Part shown: in pieces, positions 20,941-30,281 of the stretch
How the letters are laid out: every line of letters starts with the position of its first letter
How positions within the stretch are numbered: position 1 is the stretch's first letter
Assembly (NCBI GenBank): GCA_021613535.1
Contig: CP075494.1
Span: forward strand, 11,036,001 to 11,100,000
Direction: 5' to 3'
Length of the DNA: 64,000 bases
Source of the DNA: Adineta vaga
Lineage: Eukaryota > Animalia > Rotifera
Notes under the pieces: generated by a model
Told to the model about the DNA's origin: nothing
Seen by the model: the letters and a program-made list of their open reading frames with translations, nothing else
Databases searched by the model: none
Position numbers and translations under genes: made by a program

Positions 20941-22066
20941 GCTTCAATGTATGCACGCAAACACGCATACACACACAGACGAACCAAAGCACCATATTTT
21001 TCAACGACACAAAGGAATGATGTTGATGATGAAAAGCTTAACAGAGAATAGACAATAAGATGCGACTAAGCAAGGAAAGAGAGAAACGGGGGTGTTGACA
21101 CGCGCAATTATTTTAAAAGAACTTCTCGAAAACAATCAGGAAAAAACAACATGAACGAAGATGGCACTAACATCATTGCTTTTATCAAATTAAAAACAAA
21201 TTTTCTTGACGATAGACATTTAGATTAGAAGATTTAAATGTCATTTAGTTGCCCGATGAATAATAAACAGTCATTCAATGAAAAAACAAAGAATTAATTA
21301 GTTATTCCATCATTGAAATTTTCTATTTCATGAACAACAACTCGATTCAATTTGTAATAAACATGACATCAAACGGGGTCGCATTCTTTTTTTTAATTAT
21401 ATAAATTCTGATAGGGTTTATTTGATGTTATTAAAATACATGAATTTCAACAAAAGATCTTATCCGATTAAATCTGATTCTGTTTGACCTAATAGTTAAT
21501 TAATTTTTCTCGAGAAAAATCAATGTTAGTATAAGAAAAACAATCACTGAGGATTTAACATATTTCATTCATACATTTATCAAATGTTATTCTATGATAT
21601 ACTCGATGATAAATATTCTGTTGTTATTTTATATCAATAGTAAATAATGTCTGTTCACTGCATAAACTCTCCAGCTTTCTTGAGTTTGATAAATCTCGGG
21701 AGATGTAATTTCAAACCATCACGTGGCTCACATGTGATCAAGTCAAAATTCTCTTTATAGTACTCTTCACTCTGGATCTCCTAAGTGTTCTATTTCTTTC
21801 TGCATGTATATGGTTATTAAGACTTGAATGTGTGCTTCTTCTCTCGATATTTCGAGCTATCTCATATGGTATTGATATATTTGAAATGAGATTCTGAATA
21901 ATTTATACTTTGATTTGAATATATAATACGTTGTTCTCTTGTATTTCAATCGAGTGATGTGTTTTCGTTATTCATTAAAGAGAATACAAGAACAATTGCG
22001 TTTAGTTTTTAATCTGACAACAAGAAGAAGGAACGAGAAAAGAATTTTATCGCAGTTTTGTTTTTT

Positions 22067-25000
22067 CTAAGGTGATATTTGATATTCTTGAAATGGTTGA
22101 ATACGATATTGAACAAGTGATTCAAGAAACCTAGGTAAAAAGAACAAAACAAAAAGCAAGTAGAAGAAATGAAATCTCTTTCTTTTCGTTCATATTTACC
22201 ATTCAGGAGTAAGAAAATGAATACCAGAATTGATACATTTTTCATACATTTCACGTCGATTAATAAGATATTCCTTTTCGCAAAGAACAATACGTGTAAT
22301 ACCTGGTTGTAAACGAGAAAAGTGAGAATCGGTTGTATGTTTAGCACCAGATAATTGAACTAATTCAATTAATTCTTCATTATTCATCATTTCTTGACAT
22401 CCATTACATTTTAACATGATAGAAAAATGTTCTAATAAAAGGTTTTTCGGTAGATTATTTGGTAAAATACTTTGTCGACTTCGTTGCATACCTATAAAAA
22501 GCAAAGTTTCATTCAAACAAAATCAAACTTTATCATCAATTACAAACCATTATGATCAGATGAAAGTGTTAAATCACCTTGAATTTCAAATGATTTCTCA
22601 TTGATAAGTCGATTGGCTTCTAGACAAGCTTCAATCCATCGATATGTAACAATATACATATGACGAGCAACAGATTGAATAACTTTCTTCGATAATGGAC
22701 AAACAAGTGTTTCACCTTCTTCTTCGTCGGTTATTAAATGTGTCGTTGTTTCATCGACAACATTACATAATTCAATTTGAAATTTTGAACAAAAATCCTT
22801 GACACGTGCCTAAAGGTAAATGAGATAATACATACTACAACATCTTATTGACCTCAATTTGAAAATGCCTGTAACAAAGTTGTTCATTAAAAACTAAGTA
22901 CTTTCATTTCAGGATTATTTTGCCTTTCCGCTCATGATAATCGTTCTAGAGACATGACATTTGTTTTGTGACATATTTCTGTCAATAACATATGCACGTC
23001 ATAGACTTTTTTTAATTATAGTATCATTTTATCTTTTCTTACCATTTGATCATCATCTAAACAAGTTGTTGTAATAATAGTTTCTCTTTCTTTGTCGTCG
23101 TCGTCATCATCATCTTCAGTTTTAATACCATTCAATGAATATTCATAATTACTAGTTCGTTTTAGATTGTTGCTTGTTGTGACATGTGGTGATGGAGTAA
23201 TAATTCGTACCGTTCGATCTGATATCAATTCAGAATCAGTCATAACAGAGATTTTTGTTGATGTTAGAGTCGTTTGATCAGCTGTCGATGGATTACATTG
23301 TACACCAATTGAACGACAACTAACACCATTAAATAAAGGTATAGATCGATTTCCTAAAATTTCATTGAATATTATTATAAATTTCAATAGAATGTCTTAC
23401 CTTTTCGATTATCATATGATAAATGTTCATCACCTTCATCTTCTTCATCATCATTATCATCTGCAGTATCAAATGAATGTCGTAATTTTGCTTGTCGACG
23501 CCGAAGAATAGCTCGTGCGTTATTAAACCATGTTGTTACTTGATCATACGTAATTGATGATTGTTTAGCTAACTGTATCTTTTCATGATTACTTGGATAT
23601 GGATGTGTACGATGTTCTCGAAGCCATTTTTTTAAATAAGCTTAAGTTAAAATAAAAAAGTAAAAACTATAATGTCATGATAGAAATGTTCATACTTGTA
23701 GGAAATTTTTCTCGACTAGCTGAAAGTGCATTGATTAATGTATGATCAATATGTGTACCAAAAGTATCTTCTTCAACTGCTGAGGACTGTTCTTGTTTAA
23801 TATGTATATCTTCATCTAAAGAAAAAAGAATGTCCATTTGAAAGAAGAAGAAGAAGAAAATAAACGAACCTGAAATACTATAACTGTTAGATATATTATC
23901 GGTTTGTAATTCTTCTTGTTGATTATAATCATAATCCATAGATTCATCTTTAACATTCGAAACAAGATCTTTATCAAAATTGATATTGTGAACGTCTAAA
24001 AAGGAAATCAAAGAAATTTTCGACAATATTGAAAAGCTTTCGCTTAAAAAAAAAACTTGAAATATAGGAAAATAATTGTATATAATCAATTACCTGGTGT
24101 TTCATCGAGCGATGAACTACTATTAGCTCTTGCCGTCAACATTGTGCCTGTACTGATCATATTTGTTGCCATTGTAGGTGCTGTATTAGGTTTTCCATTA
24201 AGTTTAATAAAATGTTTTCGACACAATTCATTTCGTTGTGCAGCAATGAAACATCCTGGCAAAGAACAAATTGTTCGCCATACAACTCCATCAAATTTTT
24301 TTCTTGAACCATTTTCCATTTCAATAATGTCACCTTTATTTGGATGTTCAATATTGACCGATGGGGGAATAACGGCAATCGATAGACGACGATTAGGTTT
24401 TGGTACAAAACTTTTACTGATTATATCAAATGTTGGCACTTGAGATAAATTACCGGATAATGGAGAACTTGGTCGATGACGTTTACGTGATGATGAAGAA
24501 ATCACAGGTTGTTTTTGTGGAATCGATGGTGAAATAAATAATTCTTGTTCATCTTGAGGTAATGATTGAGTTATAGTATTGAAACGATGTTCATTATAAT
24601 GATGAGGACATAAACTAAAGTTATATTGATATTCATTGAAAGAAATCAAGTTATAAACAAAAATACACACCCATTCTGATATTCAAGACTACCATGTACA
24701 ACAACAGTACAAGAAGGTTTAGCACAAATACGTCGATATTGTCGTCCATCATATTTCTTTCGAACGCCATTTGGTAAAGCAATAATATCACCTTTTGTTG
24801 GCTCTTTTTGTTCAGATAAAACTGAATCAATCACGGGTAATTCATTGTCACTTTTGGAGAGTTTACGCTTTTTCGATGCAGCTAAATGTGGTTTACATAA
24901 ACCTTGACTCTGAGTATAATACGTACAATTCGGCTTTGAACACATTCGACGCCATGATGAACCATTATATTTTTTTCTTGTACCATCACTTAAATGTATA

Positions 25001-25230
25001 ATATCACCTGTATTTGCTGTTGTTGGTAAAGACATTTCTTCTCGATAGATTCGATTATCAAATGAAATACTTTTATGTGGTTTTAATGAACGAATGCGAT
25101 TAGAATTATTGATATTATTACGAGGAGATGCATTATTATTCGTATAAGATGCAGATGTTAAAGGTAAAATACGTTCAGATAAAGAAAGAAGATCATCATC
25201 TTCATTAACATTCATTTCTTGATTCATCAT
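22067..25230 (-). CDS. Multidomain protein: 3x Capicua-L-like Cys3His repeat + TALE homeodomain + tandem BRCT; exons 25230-24671, 24614-24094, 23995-23870, 23815-23696, 23640-23401, 23353-23043, 22809-22548, 22491-22200, 22130-22067
   Basis: All eight GT-AG junctions checked by hand keep the frame. Repeats GDII....G.RKK(Y/F).G..(W/Y)R..C....C...LC..H; homeodomain YLKKWLREHRTHPYPSNHEKIQLA..ITYDQVTTWFNNAR; BRCT pair with TTHLI, YRWIEAC, EIQGD..HNG and PEWFLESL. Confidence 0.85.
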
Positions 25231-27792
25231 AAATAAGTTTAAATAGAAATTTGTATCGAATGCATACGATACCCTTCAAACATTTGTTGACAAACAAGTA
25301 AGTAACTCGTCCTATCTGCCAGATCAAACGGTCAAACTTATCAACCAATTGAACTTAATCATGCGGTTTTTCATTTTGACGACAACGACATTGAGCGACC
25401 TCTATCGACACTATGTCAGTATCGAATCATTTCATATATTTCAAAAGTTCACATTCGAATTAAGCCCTCATCGGAAGCTTTTGTGCAAATAGAACAAAGA
25501 AAACCTTTTTAATATTAGTCTATGAGATACTATGATCAAATGCATTCTTGAGGAGAGACAACAATAATGATTTGTTTTCATACTTTCTAAACTTTATATA
25601 TGCATCCATAAAGAAATCAAGTGTTTTATACTAGAGAGAATTTTTTTCCTGTCAATTATAACCTTTTGAATAGCAGTAGAAATATGACAACTAGAATAAT
25701 AAACTTCTTACATAGAAGTAAATATTTGACGAATATGAATCAGTATAGATTATTATAAGATTAAAAACGATGTTAAATGACGCGTTTTTCTTTTGATAAG
25801 TGGCATATAGTTGACGTATATAAATGAGGTGATTATCTGACGAAGTTTTATATAAATATATGTATATCGTATGAAGTTGTTATTTGCTTTACTCATTTCG
25901 AAAATAAGAGTTTTCAATCTCTCATAATCATCAAAGGTCATATTGAGCTCTTTTCAGTTCGAACCGAGTTATTTAAAACGTATGAATCATGCCATTTGAC
26001 TTTCTCGTTGCCATTTATTGTTTAATATTGGTATTATTTTCTTTCTTAATTAAATATATTGTAATCATTTCCAACAATTCTTATATTATTAGACTAAAGC
26101 CACATTTGAAAGAGAGAATATCTGTTTTATTCTGATCACGTATCGAATATATATATATTTGGATGAAATGAATTAATCTTGATAACAAATAAATAAATAA
26201 TATGTTCGTTTCTATTCAATTAGATTCGATCTTTCATTTTTCTTCGTAGCAAAAAAAAGTCACATATGCGCTTCTCCCTCGATCTTTCCATGACTTTCTT
26301 TCCGCTATCTATAGATAAAAAAAGAAAATGCTTATATCATTCACACATGTTTGAAGATTAATCATCTATTGATAGATTTTTATTCATCCTTACGTCGTTT
26401 CGGAAGCACATTATATTCATTCACTATATAATGTATGTTTATTTATCTAAGAGGATCTTATTGAAATTCTGATATGATTTGTCTTAGAAAAGAAAAACAA
26501 CTTAAATAATAATCGATTTTTGTTATTCATCAAGCGCGTGTTATAGATTTTAAAGTCTATTAATACGAAAAACGATAAACGATATCGTTATTGTTAATTG
26601 TCAATTAAATCCAATGTCTATATTTATCTACTCGTACAAAGTTTCTTTTTGTTGTTATTGTTATTAAAACTAAGCTTGATAATGAAAAAAGTGAAATTAT
26701 ATCTTTTGTCTGACAGAAATCTGAGATCATGTATTAGAATTGTTACGTTATAGCTTATTTTTCGAAATGATCTAAAATTTAATAACAATAGAGAAAAAAG
26801 AAAATTCTAAAAGAATGAATAAATTTATATGAGATACTATTGAATCAGAATAAAAATCGATAAGATTCGCTTTTTATTCTACAGACGAGAGAGAAATATT
26901 TGATAGGAATGTTTTTATGTTTGATTATTGATTTCATGTGATATTAATCGCATGAATAGGACTTGATCGCGACCTCGAATCTGTAAATAAACAATAATAA
27001 TTATAGTTTAGTCGAAGTATAAAAAGATGTATATTATTGTATTTTTTTGTCCCTGAATTTCTTCATCTTGGCAACGTTTGACATTTGATCGACGACAATG
27101 TATATATACATATATATAGAACTAGCAACAGTATTTGTTCTCCTTAGGTTTTTTTGTTTCTCTTCTGCTCTTAATAAATCTTTCTTTTTTCTTCTTCTTC
27201 TTCGCTGTTCTTTTATGTTGAATTTCTGTTCGTTCTGATAATGGAGAAAAGTCGAACAATTCTATGCAGTACGAGTGTATACATAGCGAAGAAGATCTTG
27301 TAATCGCATGGAGAGAAAAAATCGGAAGAGAGACATGCGGTTGTATTCTTTGCCGACTAATAAATAGTACCGGCTGTTGTGTTCGTTCCTACAAAATTCT
27401 TTTTTCTTCATTTTTTTTTTACATATTTGCATTTAGCACGTCAATGTTTCTCTAGTTGAGTACATCCTTTCTATTCCATCATTCACAAAAAATTGATGAT
27501 TTGTTTCTTTTCAATCACATTCGATACTGACATCTACCTACAGAAGAATCCTTATTAAATTAGATCGCACAAAAATTCAAGTAATGAACAGTTAAGTGAA
27601 TTGTTGAGTAGCAGTTTTTGCAAAATAAAATGACAAGAATTTCAATGAATGTTTATTCATTGATCGATTGATTGATTGATTGATCTCTAAGAATTGAAAT
27701 CAATGATTCATCATGACTTTTTTTTTGTTTATCTATCTATTTGTGATGTCTGTTTTCTTTTTTTCTTCTTCTATAGAATAGAATGTAATGTA

Positions 27793-30281
27793 ATGTTATC
27801 TTCATTTGCAACTGCATCATCTTCTTCATCTTCCTCTCCGTACGAAACTCCAACATCTTGGTGGAAAATTAATTTCATAAGTGGTTCATGTGCAGCTGCA
27901 GCTACAACTCTTCTTCCATCATCTCCTTCTTTAACGCAAGATTCATTAACGTTTACGACGAATACCGATCATTATCATCAATGTGAGTAACTGAAAGAAA
28001 GAAAAAAGAAAAATTGGTAATCATAACTCAGTATGTAGAATGATGACAACGTATTTTTCTATACATATATCGTTGCTGTACAACACAATCACGCATTTCG
28101 TGCGAAGAAGTATTTATTGTACGACAGAAAGCAAAAAGAAGAACGAGAGAAAAAAACGAAGAAGAAAAAGAAAAGAAAAAAAGAATTGATTTCATCTCTC
28201 GAATACTCATTTCATAAGAATATATGACGAAGACGAATGAATAAAATGTCTCTTACTATTTTTTATTTGCATTGATTTATTCAACTTCATTTATTTTGAG
28301 ATATATTTTACCTTGCTTACTCATTTATATTCAATGATTAGCAACGGAGGTATACTTCTAATTAAAAGACAAACAACTGTTTTTGATGATAATAAACATA
28401 TTTTCTTCTTCTTCTTTTTCGAATAGCTCATACAAATGGTTTTGTCCATAATGAAAATGACGAATCATTACGAGTACTTATTTTTGCTGAAAGTTTTCCT
28501 TCATTTACAAGTGGTATAACACGTCGATTTAAAGAAATTATTCGACGTTTAGCAAAACGAAATCATTACATTCATGTAATTACTGGTTGTACAGTAAGTT
28601 AAAGAAAAATTCAAAGCATTCTTAAATGTTTTATTTGCATATCTTTAACTTGAATAAACCTTGTTTTATTTTGTTTCTATTTAGAATGCCTTAACATGGG
28701 TTGAAGGAAACGATATACTTAAAAAATATGTTACATTTTCAGTTTTACCATCAACAGAATTTACAAATAAAATCGATTGTGCTTGTCCATTTCTTTTTCC
28801 TAATGTACGTATTTATACGAACGAATATTTGTGCATTCATGCGTTGAAACTGCCGTATTGTGGTTTTATACGAATGATCGAAAGCAAAGTAGATAAATTT
28901 AGTAAAAGCAAGGTCAATCTTTCCCCCCGCTTTTTTTTGGATACAGTACATAAAACTAAAGTACGATGGAAAAAGAAAAGAAAAGATAAACATCTTAACA
29001 TTCAATGAGTAGAGAATGTGTTGAGAAGAAAAAGAATGAATAATATTTATTTTCAAGATAAAAATATTTGAAGAGAGAAAACAATCGATTGTTTTACTTT
29101 AGCCAACTGTGTATTCAGCCGTTCGTCGATTTGCGCCTGATGTTGTTCATATTGTTGAACAAACTCCAGCAGCAATGTTATGTGGTGCCATTGTGAAATC
29201 TTTGAATATCCCAATTGTTTGGTCATCACATACTAATATTGATTTTTATCTCTCGACATACATTCGGTCCTATGCAGTTGCTATGACTCGACGTTTATAT
29301 CAATTGATTCGTTTGAAACATTTAATTTATTCCTCAGTGAATTTAACAGTTAGTAAAGATTTTGCTGATTTTATGGAACATACAGGGGTACAAAAACCAG
29401 TTATTGTATGGAAAACGGGTGTTGATTCCGAATTATTTAATCCGATTCGACGTTCACGTTCAATGCGTTATCGAATGTTTGGAACATATAATAATTTTAG
29501 TGAAGAAGAAATGGATTCAATAACATTATTTCTTTGTGTTGGTCGAATATCTCCGGAGAAGAATTTCGAATTTTTATCACTTGTATTAGATCGTATTCCG
29601 GAGCAAACATTTCTTTGTATTATTGGTGATGGTCCATATCGACAGGCACTTGAACCAATTTTTCCGAAAGATCGTGTCAACTTTTTTGGTTATCTGGGAG
29701 GTGAAGAATTAGCAAGTGCCTATGCAAGTGCTGATTATTTTCTTTATGCATCCGTGAGTGAAACATTTGGACAAGTTTATTTGGAAGCAATGGCGAGTGG
29801 TACACCAGTTATTGCTGCTGAAGGTGGACAATTAAAGGAATTTTTTGTTAATGGTGAACATGGATATTTATGGACGCCAGATAGTTTAGAATCAGCTGAA
29901 GAAGCTGTACGTGATGCCATGAAAGATAGAAAATATCTTTCGATAAAAGCTCGACAACAAGCATTAAAACATTCATGGGATTCAGCTAGCGAACAATTAA
30001 ATGATATTTATTATGATGCAGTTCGACGAAGTCGTCAGAAAGATGAGAAGAAAACAATGAATATCTTTACTATTGGAGTACGATTATTTTATTATGGACT
30101 CAATTGGTTAATATTAATGACACTTGCATTACTTTTCATGGCACCATTTGTAAAAGTTTCATCACCAAAACCAAGTGCTACACAAAGGAATGATCGAAAT
30201 AATAATCCATGTTATCAAAATCAACATAATTCAGTAGTGACAAAAGAATTCTCTTCTTCTTGTTCTTCTTCTTCTTCTTGA
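27793..30281 (+). CDS. GT4 (GT-B) glycosyltransferase, SQD2/sulfoquinovosyltransferase-like; exons 27793-27982, 28427-28593, 28685-28804, 29103-30281
   Basis: LRVLIFAESFPSFTSGITRRF; WSSHTN; VWKTGVDSELFNPIRRSRSMR; VGRISPEKN; IGDGPYR; GEELASAYASAD; SETFGQVYLEAMASGTPV (E-x7-E); C-terminal hydrophobic helix. Confidence 0.85.

Follow-up and report, generated by a model that had tools for sequence, protein, structure and literature searches.

A locus in the rotifer Adineta vaga raises the question of whether a single gene can join zinc-binding repeats like those of Capicua, a homeodomain, and the tandem BRCT domains of BRCA1, and what such a protein might do. The locus lies in a window of 64,000 nucleotides (nt), which corresponds to C5:11036001-11100000 in the A. 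vaga genome; the genome was searched as 100.8 Mb in six pieces. A sequence-only reading of this window had described one gene of nine exons and eight GT-AG introns, had remarked that the list of open reading frames (ORFs) breaks the gene into fragments, and had found the case of particular interest if the host were a bdelloid rotifer. The host is indeed a bdelloid, A. vaga, and the locus on its chromosome C5 is an expressed gene that encodes one multidomain protein of 831 residues. On the minus strand of the window, the nine exons are separated by introns of 47 to 233 nt, every one of which begins with GT and ends with AG, and the coding frame of 2496 nt is unbroken between its ATG at 25230 and its TAG at 22069-22067. 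The exons were queried singly, and the public protein P0165 (NCBI I4U23_025467, Adineta vaga, 831 residues) was identified as the identical product, containing the nine exon translations in order with one extra split-codon residue wherever a junction falls inside a codon. P0165 was then taken as the full-length reference. The earlier coordinates were exact, including those of the homeodomain exon and the first BRCT exon, and the mechanical ORF list does fragment the gene. From the N terminus onward, the protein carries three N1-type zinc modules, a TALE homeodomain, and a BRCA1-type tandem BRCT (Table 1).

Transcription of the locus as one unit was assessed with contigs from public sequencing runs, which were compared with positions 21500-25800; that these run records represent RNA was a guess only. 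Spliced contigs at the predicted boundaries came from three studies (runs X1, X17, and X5). A contig of 2228 nt in X1 (2226 nt in X17) spans 25291 to 22546 and lacks introns 1 to 7. The joints listed for it are those of introns 1, 2, 4, 5, and 6; the joint of intron 3 is masked by a simple repeat, and removal of this intron follows from the contig coordinates, because the 120 nt between the flanking pieces correspond to exon 4. Intron 6 (23042-22810), where a break between two genes had been considered possible, is bridged by at least 255 letters on each side in all three runs, so that contigs from three studies cross it and indicate one gene and one mRNA. A second contig (22490-21933) has intron 8 spliced out. 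The weakest link is the joint of exons 7 and 8, since the 2.2-kilobase (kb) contig reaches 25 nt into exon 8 and its short side of 25 letters compares with a 31-letter rule. This joint is further supported by the alignment of the BRCT pair to BRCA1 across it and by the agreement of independent gene models. A genome-wide search found no intronless copy, and the only matches at 97 to 100% were the exons at this locus. Because the introns are missing exactly at the predicted boundaries and there is no intronless genomic copy, the contigs derive from spliced RNA. Besides, the homeodomain-side exons are tied to the BRCT exons, since exon 6 ends with the codons for strand β1 of the first BRCT domain and its pocket loop.

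Two further observations concern the runs themselves. In run X5, the word depth was 1 to 6 over the 5' exons (window 23400-25291) versus 21 to 67 over exons 6 to 9; the contrast may reflect a 3' bias or a shorter 3' isoform, between which the contigs cannot discriminate. Run X15 (2013) gave unspliced, DNA-like contigs over 22528-22654 and 21500-22490 that depart from the window by A>G, T>C, and A>C changes; the 22528-22654 piece was present as two variants. These differences are probably allelic or strain variation.

We then compared each module with known proteins. The sequence-only reading had likened them to the BRCT pair of BRCA1, to an IRX/MKX-like homeodomain, and to the N-terminal repeat of long Capicua (Capicua-L), and the three likenesses hold. 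For the C-terminal part, residues 600-831 match the BRCT structures of human and rat BRCA1 with an E value of 5e-17 over about 210 residues, and the next family, microcephalin, follows at 0.005. Exon 8 alone had no match among PDB sequences, whereas the whole BRCT pair did; intron 6 falls within the first BRCT domain. The residues that line the BRCA1 pocket can be aligned: Ser1655 and Lys1702 of BRCA1 correspond to Thr619 and Lys668, both invariant in 12 aligned sequences, Thr1700 corresponds to Ser666, Met1775 is kept as Met, Gly1656 corresponds to Cys620, and Arg1699 corresponds to Leu665. Judged from this alignment, a BRCA1-type phosphoserine pocket is kept. No RING family was detected in P0165 by Pfam at E ≤0.1, and a BRCA1 RING query gave 63 RING matches in the genome, none of them near a BRCT-pair locus. 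An assignment as a BRCA1 ortholog was rejected because these searches found no RING and only the BRCT pair resembles BRCA1. Lacking a RING, the protein gives no grounds to expect heterodimerization with BARD1 or E3 ligase activity.

The homeodomain was recognized by Pfam as Homeobox_KN in two scans (E values of 1.2e-15 and 1.7e-14). The three-residue extension of the TALE class is present, as MEIS and caupolican can be aligned without a gap across HR-THP-YP; relative to caupolican, two residues are inserted ahead of helix 1. Drosophila caupolican was the best homeodomain-only match in a profile search of full-length proteins, with 49% identity over 57 residues, in a comparison that covered the homeodomain segment only. 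A search of the A. vaga genome with caupolican recovered three true Iroquois loci at 83 to 85% identity, followed at 50% by the window gene and its ohnolog, which ranked above all other TALE genes. An Iroquois ortholog was rejected on these identities and on Asn50, which takes the place of Ala50. The homeodomain is thus Iroquois-like and atypical, not an Iroquois ortholog. Of the canonical DNA-contact residues, Trp48, Phe49, Asn51, and Arg53 are present and conserved in the alignment, and Arg5 and Arg55 are missing. Searches of the ESM Atlas gave only generic TALE clusters with scores below 0.85 for the homeodomain part and no usable match for the whole protein.

The N-terminal repeats share the consensus GD-x8-G-x-RKK-[FY]-[ND]-G-x2-[WY]-RR-x-C-x4-C-x9(14)-C-x2-H. 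With exon 1 as the query, exhaustive HMMER searching recovered 402 proteins at E ≤0.001, most of them with a single copy of the motif; those that were scanned with Pfam have DUF4819 and an HMG box, as in Capicua. By the HMMER matches and the motif comparison, the repeats correspond to the single N1 motif of Capicua-L in Capicua proteins across animals, the A. vaga Capicua orthologs included. The N1 domain of Cic-L was described by Rodriguez-Munoz et al. in 2022 (PMC9351367), who reported three strands and a helix for the zebrafish domain and found that the N terminus of Drosophila Cic-L alone binds chromatin (PMC9351367). Likewise, three strands and a helix appear in the AlphaFold model for repeat 1, which drew on 63 N1 sequences and has a predicted local distance difference test (pLDDT) score of 85. 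A Foldseek search of the PDB with this model returned nothing at E ≤0.001. With an exhaustive aligner, model residues 28-58 could be superposed on A20 ZnF4, A20 ZnF7, ZNF216, and Rabex-5, with a root mean square deviation of 0.8 to 1.6 Å over 31 to 33 residues and Z scores of only 2.1 to 3.4, which we regard as no more than a lead; Pfam gave no zf-A20 match in P0165. A Capicua paralog with an HMG box was also considered and rejected, because P0165 has no HMG box and the true Capicua orthologs are at other loci. Indeed, the most canonical N1 copies of A. vaga sit immediately upstream of the HMG boxes at C4:871971 and C1:10727161, and the best match of the C4 HMG box among solved structures was human Capicua (E value of 6.7e-23). 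In protein searches, all named proteins with multiple N1 copies were bdelloid. Finally, a KKRK motif follows repeat 1; it may act as a nuclear import signal, and from this motif and the nature of the domains we infer that the protein is nuclear.

Table 1. Positions of the gene, its modules, and related loci in A. vaga (window coordinates unless a chromosome is named)
Feature	Position	Strand	Remarks
Transcribed region	21933..25291	-	5' untranslated region ~61 nt, 3' untranslated region ~134 nt; spliced contigs, X1 records 1/2, X17 records 11/12
Coding region, 831 codons + TAG	22067..25230	-	9 exons, 8 GT-AG introns
Exons 1-3	25230-24671, 24614-24094, 23995-23870	-	reading of sequence and frame
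Exons 4-6	23815-23696, 23640-23401, 23353-23043	-	reading of sequence and frame
Exons 7-9	22809-22548, 22491-22200, 22130-22067	-	reading of sequence and frame
N1-type Cys3His repeat 1, residues 69-123	24862..25026	-	C-x4-C-x9-C-x2-H; sequence motif
N1-type repeat 2, residues 141-200	24575..24810	-	C-x4-C-x14-C-x2-H; interrupted by intron 1 (24670-24615)
N1-type repeat 3, residues 275-329	24188..24352	-	best conserved of the three repeats
TALE homeodomain, residues ~431-500	23468..23732	-	split by intron 4 (23695-23641) near start of helix 1
BRCT 1, residues ~613-713	22549..23084	-	β1 and Thr619-Cys620 loop at end of exon 6; rest in exon 7
Inter-BRCT linker and BRCT 2, residues 714-831	22070..22548	-	exons 8 and 9
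Upstream ORF, 14 codons (MFEGYRMHSIQISI)	25239-25283	-	in contig-covered 5' untranslated region; out of frame with ATG 25230
Capicua ortholog, N1 then HMG box within ~0.65 kb	C4:871011-872174	+	HMG box at C4:871971
Capicua ortholog, N1 and HMG box in same open frame	C1:10727161-10727589	-	HMG box at C1:10727161
Short homeodomain-BRCT gene	C5:13254807-13255926 (= L017:3308-4427)	+	
Short homeodomain-BRCT gene	C2:4194483-4195483	-	
BRCT-only gene directly downstream of ohnolog	C2:7216965-7219000 (= L009:5966-8001)	+	45-47% identical to exon 7
Further BRCA1-like tandem BRCT loci (at least 11)	C4:11975214, C2:4684871, C1:2802932, C4:11598423, C6:12279331, C6:12232847, C2:4112754, C2:13831252, C5:13334285, C5:13337157, C1:2805358		

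The architecture is not confined to one locus or to one species. An ohnolog on C2 (P0169, 816 residues) has all nine exons in order, with 39 to 80% amino acid identity per exon. The same Pfam architecture (Homeobox_KN plus BRCT) was found in Adineta ricciae, A. steineri, Rotaria sordida, R. magnacalcarata, two Silwood Rotaria isolates, and Didymodactylos carnosus. Compared with the same-copy orthologs of Adineta and Rotaria, the domains are 82 to 96% identical and the linkers 41 to 74%, a pattern expected for purifying selection on every module. Such selection goes back to the last common ancestor of the sampled bdelloids or earlier. A D. carnosus protein (P0021, 820 residues) has four N1 repeats and a BRCT pair, and its fourth N1 repeat aligns where the other proteins have the homeodomain, a sign that modules may have been swapped within the family. 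Public annotation already includes the gene for at least seven bdelloid species, so that it is undescribed rather than unseen.

Outside bdelloids, protein searches and an exhaustive search found no such combination of modules besides environmental contigs, with the limits that word-based searches can miss distant relatives and that no non-bdelloid rotifer genome was searched directly. The best non-bdelloid matches of the modules were BRCA1, caupolican, and Capicua. The earlier remark that no known protein combines these modules was thus borne out by the protein searches outside bdelloids. Besides, we found no paper on a homeodomain-BRCT protein with the terms homeobox/BRCT/rotifer and TALE homeodomain/BRCT domain. 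We conclude that the gene is a lineage-specific shuffle that takes one module each from BRCA1, Capicua, and Iroquois and is an ortholog of none of them. It represents a real, lineage-restricted architecture: the modules are well known, and the searches found them united in a single polypeptide only in bdelloids, a combination that is undescribed in the literature found.

At least 15 loci in the A. vaga genome carry BRCA1-like BRCT pairs. At two of them, a TALE homeodomain (WFTNARVKMRK) lies a few hundred bases upstream of the BRCT pair. These short genes resemble the window gene in having a homeodomain and a BRCT pair, of which BRCT 1 is 50% identical, whereas they are much shorter, and the genome search for N1 gave no match at either locus. 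The homeodomain-BRCT union thus exists in two paralogous forms in the genome. For the BRCT-only gene that directly follows the ohnolog, no counterpart downstream of the window gene was found by tblastn. The further BRCA1-like BRCT loci are mostly single ORFs of about 200 residues, and no Pfam domain was detected in the ORFs upstream of three BRCT-only paralogs. Joining BRCA1-like BRCT pairs to other domains is a bdelloid habit, and the window gene belongs to it. As a genome search found no BRCA1-type RING near the BRCA1-like BRCT loci, canonical BRCA1 may be absent from A. vaga.

Published data bear on this family in two ways. A survey of bdelloid DNA repair (PMC6264785) makes no mention of BRCA1, and Table S8 of Moris et al. 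2024 (PMC10809525) places two Homeobox_KN genes under homologous recombination (HR), BRCA1, and K10605, namely, FUN_020908 (Pfam BRCT, Homeobox KN, and BRCT_2) and FUN_007433 (Pfam Homeobox KN). In the same table, their mean counts are 245 and 316, and their log2 fold changes range from -0.12 to 0.39 with false discovery rates above 0.05. They are flat at the X-ray time points, in the hydrated-irradiated condition, and also upon desiccation (PMC10809525), and the table gives increases of 3 to 7 log2 units for PARP, ligase E, PCNA, and Pol beta. As there are four homeodomain-BRCT loci and the identifiers are unmapped to NCBI tags, these two rows may describe either the window gene and its ohnolog or the short pair. 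Supplementary file 9 of the same study lists FUN_026293, with BRCT, TFIIA-gamma, and 53BP1-Tudor Pfam domains, as strongly irradiation-induced (log2 fold change of about 2.4 to 2.8, mean count of 7859); it may be a fused gene model.

What might such a protein do? On balance, we think it probable that it is a chromatin- or DNA-tethered, phosphopeptide-reading nuclear adaptor or transcription regulator. The N-terminal half, with its three zinc-binding N1 modules and divergent Iroquois-like TALE homeodomain, would provide the tether, and the C-terminal BRCA1-type tandem BRCT would read a phosphoserine motif on a partner. By this reading, either the partner would be brought to the genomic sites of the protein or the protein would be brought to phosphorylated chromatin. 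Several features weigh against such a role. For the N1 fold, no solved structure is a clear relative; the nearest are A20-type zinc fingers (Z score of 3.4, 31 residues). In the homeodomain, Arg5 and Arg55 are replaced by Ala and Ile, position 50 is Asn, and position 54 is Ala; because Arg5 and Arg55 are missing and Asn occupies position 50, ordinary homeodomain-type DNA binding is not to be assumed, and the domain may bind DNA unusually or not at all. The pocket changes of Gly1656 to Cys and Arg1699 to Leu bear on peptide specificity. Across the family, Asn50, Ala54, Ile55, and the missing Arg5 are invariant or nearly so, which speaks for a constrained, unusual mode of binding and against decay.

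Among the other explanations, it seems hardly credible that the architecture is an artefact of annotation or assembly behind which two or more separate genes are hidden. Although the contigs break at the start of exon 8 with an overhang of 25 letters at the exon 7/8 joint, and the truncated ortholog models P0171-P0173 lack the BRCTs, one contig in two studies covers exons 1 to 7 and hence the N1 repeats, the homeodomain, and most of BRCT 1. Moreover, strand β1 of BRCT 1 is encoded in exon 6, which follows the homeodomain exon, the alignment of the BRCT pair to BRCA1 runs on without a break over the exon 7/8 boundary, and independent predictions for seven species and for the ohnolog have the full-length architecture. 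On the spliced contigs, the β1 strand in exon 6, and the architecture of orthologs and ohnolog, we rejected a two-gene artefact. A functional replacement of BRCA1 in HR, as implied by the automatically assigned KEGG label K10605, is easier to imagine and still very improbable. Among outside matches of the BRCT pair, BRCA1 ranks first, the BRCA1-like BRCT loci have no RING nearby so that canonical BRCA1 may be absent, and Homeobox_KN genes were filed under HR and BRCA1 (PMC10809525 Table S8), but the protein has no RING by Pfam at E ≤0.1, its similarity to BRCA1 lies in the BRCT pair alone at 23% identity, and its N-terminal half consists of transcription-factor modules.

A DNA-damage-coupled transcription factor, in which the BRCT pair would read phosphorylation by damage kinases and lead to promoter binding or activation, thereby aiding tolerance of double-strand breaks, seems to us rather unlikely. 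It would agree with the kept phosphoserine pocket of a BRCA1-type BRCT pair, with a bdelloid host that tolerates radiation and desiccation, and with the expansion of BRCA1-like BRCT pairs to at least 15 loci. However, the ligands of BRCA1 BRCT domains are pSer-x-x-Phe (phosphoserine-x-x-Phe) motifs of the cyclin-dependent kinase type, not the SQ/TQ motifs of damage kinases, which counts against this explanation. FUN_020908 and FUN_007433 were also flat after X-rays and desiccation, although their identity with this gene is unverified and a reader of phosphorylation could act without any induction. To relay DNA damage to transcription in this way is possible but speculative. A wider form of the idea, which we consider decidedly unlikely, is that bdelloids possess a lineage-specific class of transcription regulators with a BRCA1-type phosphopeptide reader fixed to DNA- or chromatin-binding modules (N1 fingers, TALE homeodomains, and perhaps others), by which kinase signals of chromosome breakage or of rehydration would be read directly at target genes; if this were true, the large repair-gene response would lie under the upstream control of the window gene and its paralogs. 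More speculatively, the N1 modules could be A20-like ubiquitin readers, in which case the protein would combine the reading of ubiquitin, phosphate, and DNA. The tethered phosphopeptide reader remains the explanation that we favor.

Two ORFs deserve a brief remark. The short upstream ORF in the 5' untranslated region could affect translation of the gene. Elsewhere in the window, an ORF of 390 residues lies at 29109-30281 on the plus strand.

The A. vaga "BRCA1" of DNA-repair inventories appears to consist of homeodomain-BRCT fusions without a RING. If this is true, bdelloids, which are known for repairing shattered genomes, may lack canonical BRCA1. The gene also offers a natural experiment, both on the role of a BRCA1-type BRCT pair that is tethered to DNA-binding domains and on the role of the N1 domain of Capicua-L, which is here in triplicate and away from the HMG box.

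Compared with the systems from which its modules are known, the protein is in each case partly alike and partly different. It shares with BRCA1 the entire BRCT-linker-BRCT unit, the Ser/Thr...Lys pocket, and Met1775, whereas the identity within the BRCT pair is only 23% (BLASTP versus fish BRCA1, P0179), there is no alignment to P0179 beyond the BRCT pair (query residues 600-831, with coiled coil and central region outside this test), and the N-terminal partner domains are predicted DNA- or chromatin-binding modules, with no RING found by Pfam. The homeodomain shares the [NS]A[ST]RE start with caupolican, but it has Ala54-Ile55 where the Iroquois class has Arg-Arg, and it lacks a basic N-terminal arm. 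In the N1 repeats, the cysteines and histidine follow C-x4-C-x9-C-x2-H, unlike the C-x2-4-C-x11-C-x2-C pattern of A20-type zinc fingers. With Capicua-L, the protein has in common the N1 repeat consensus and the predicted three strands and helix; in contrast to it, P0165 has three N1 copies instead of one, a longer cysteine spacer in repeat 2, and, by Pfam, neither the HMG_box nor the Tudor-like DUF4819 domain of Capicua.

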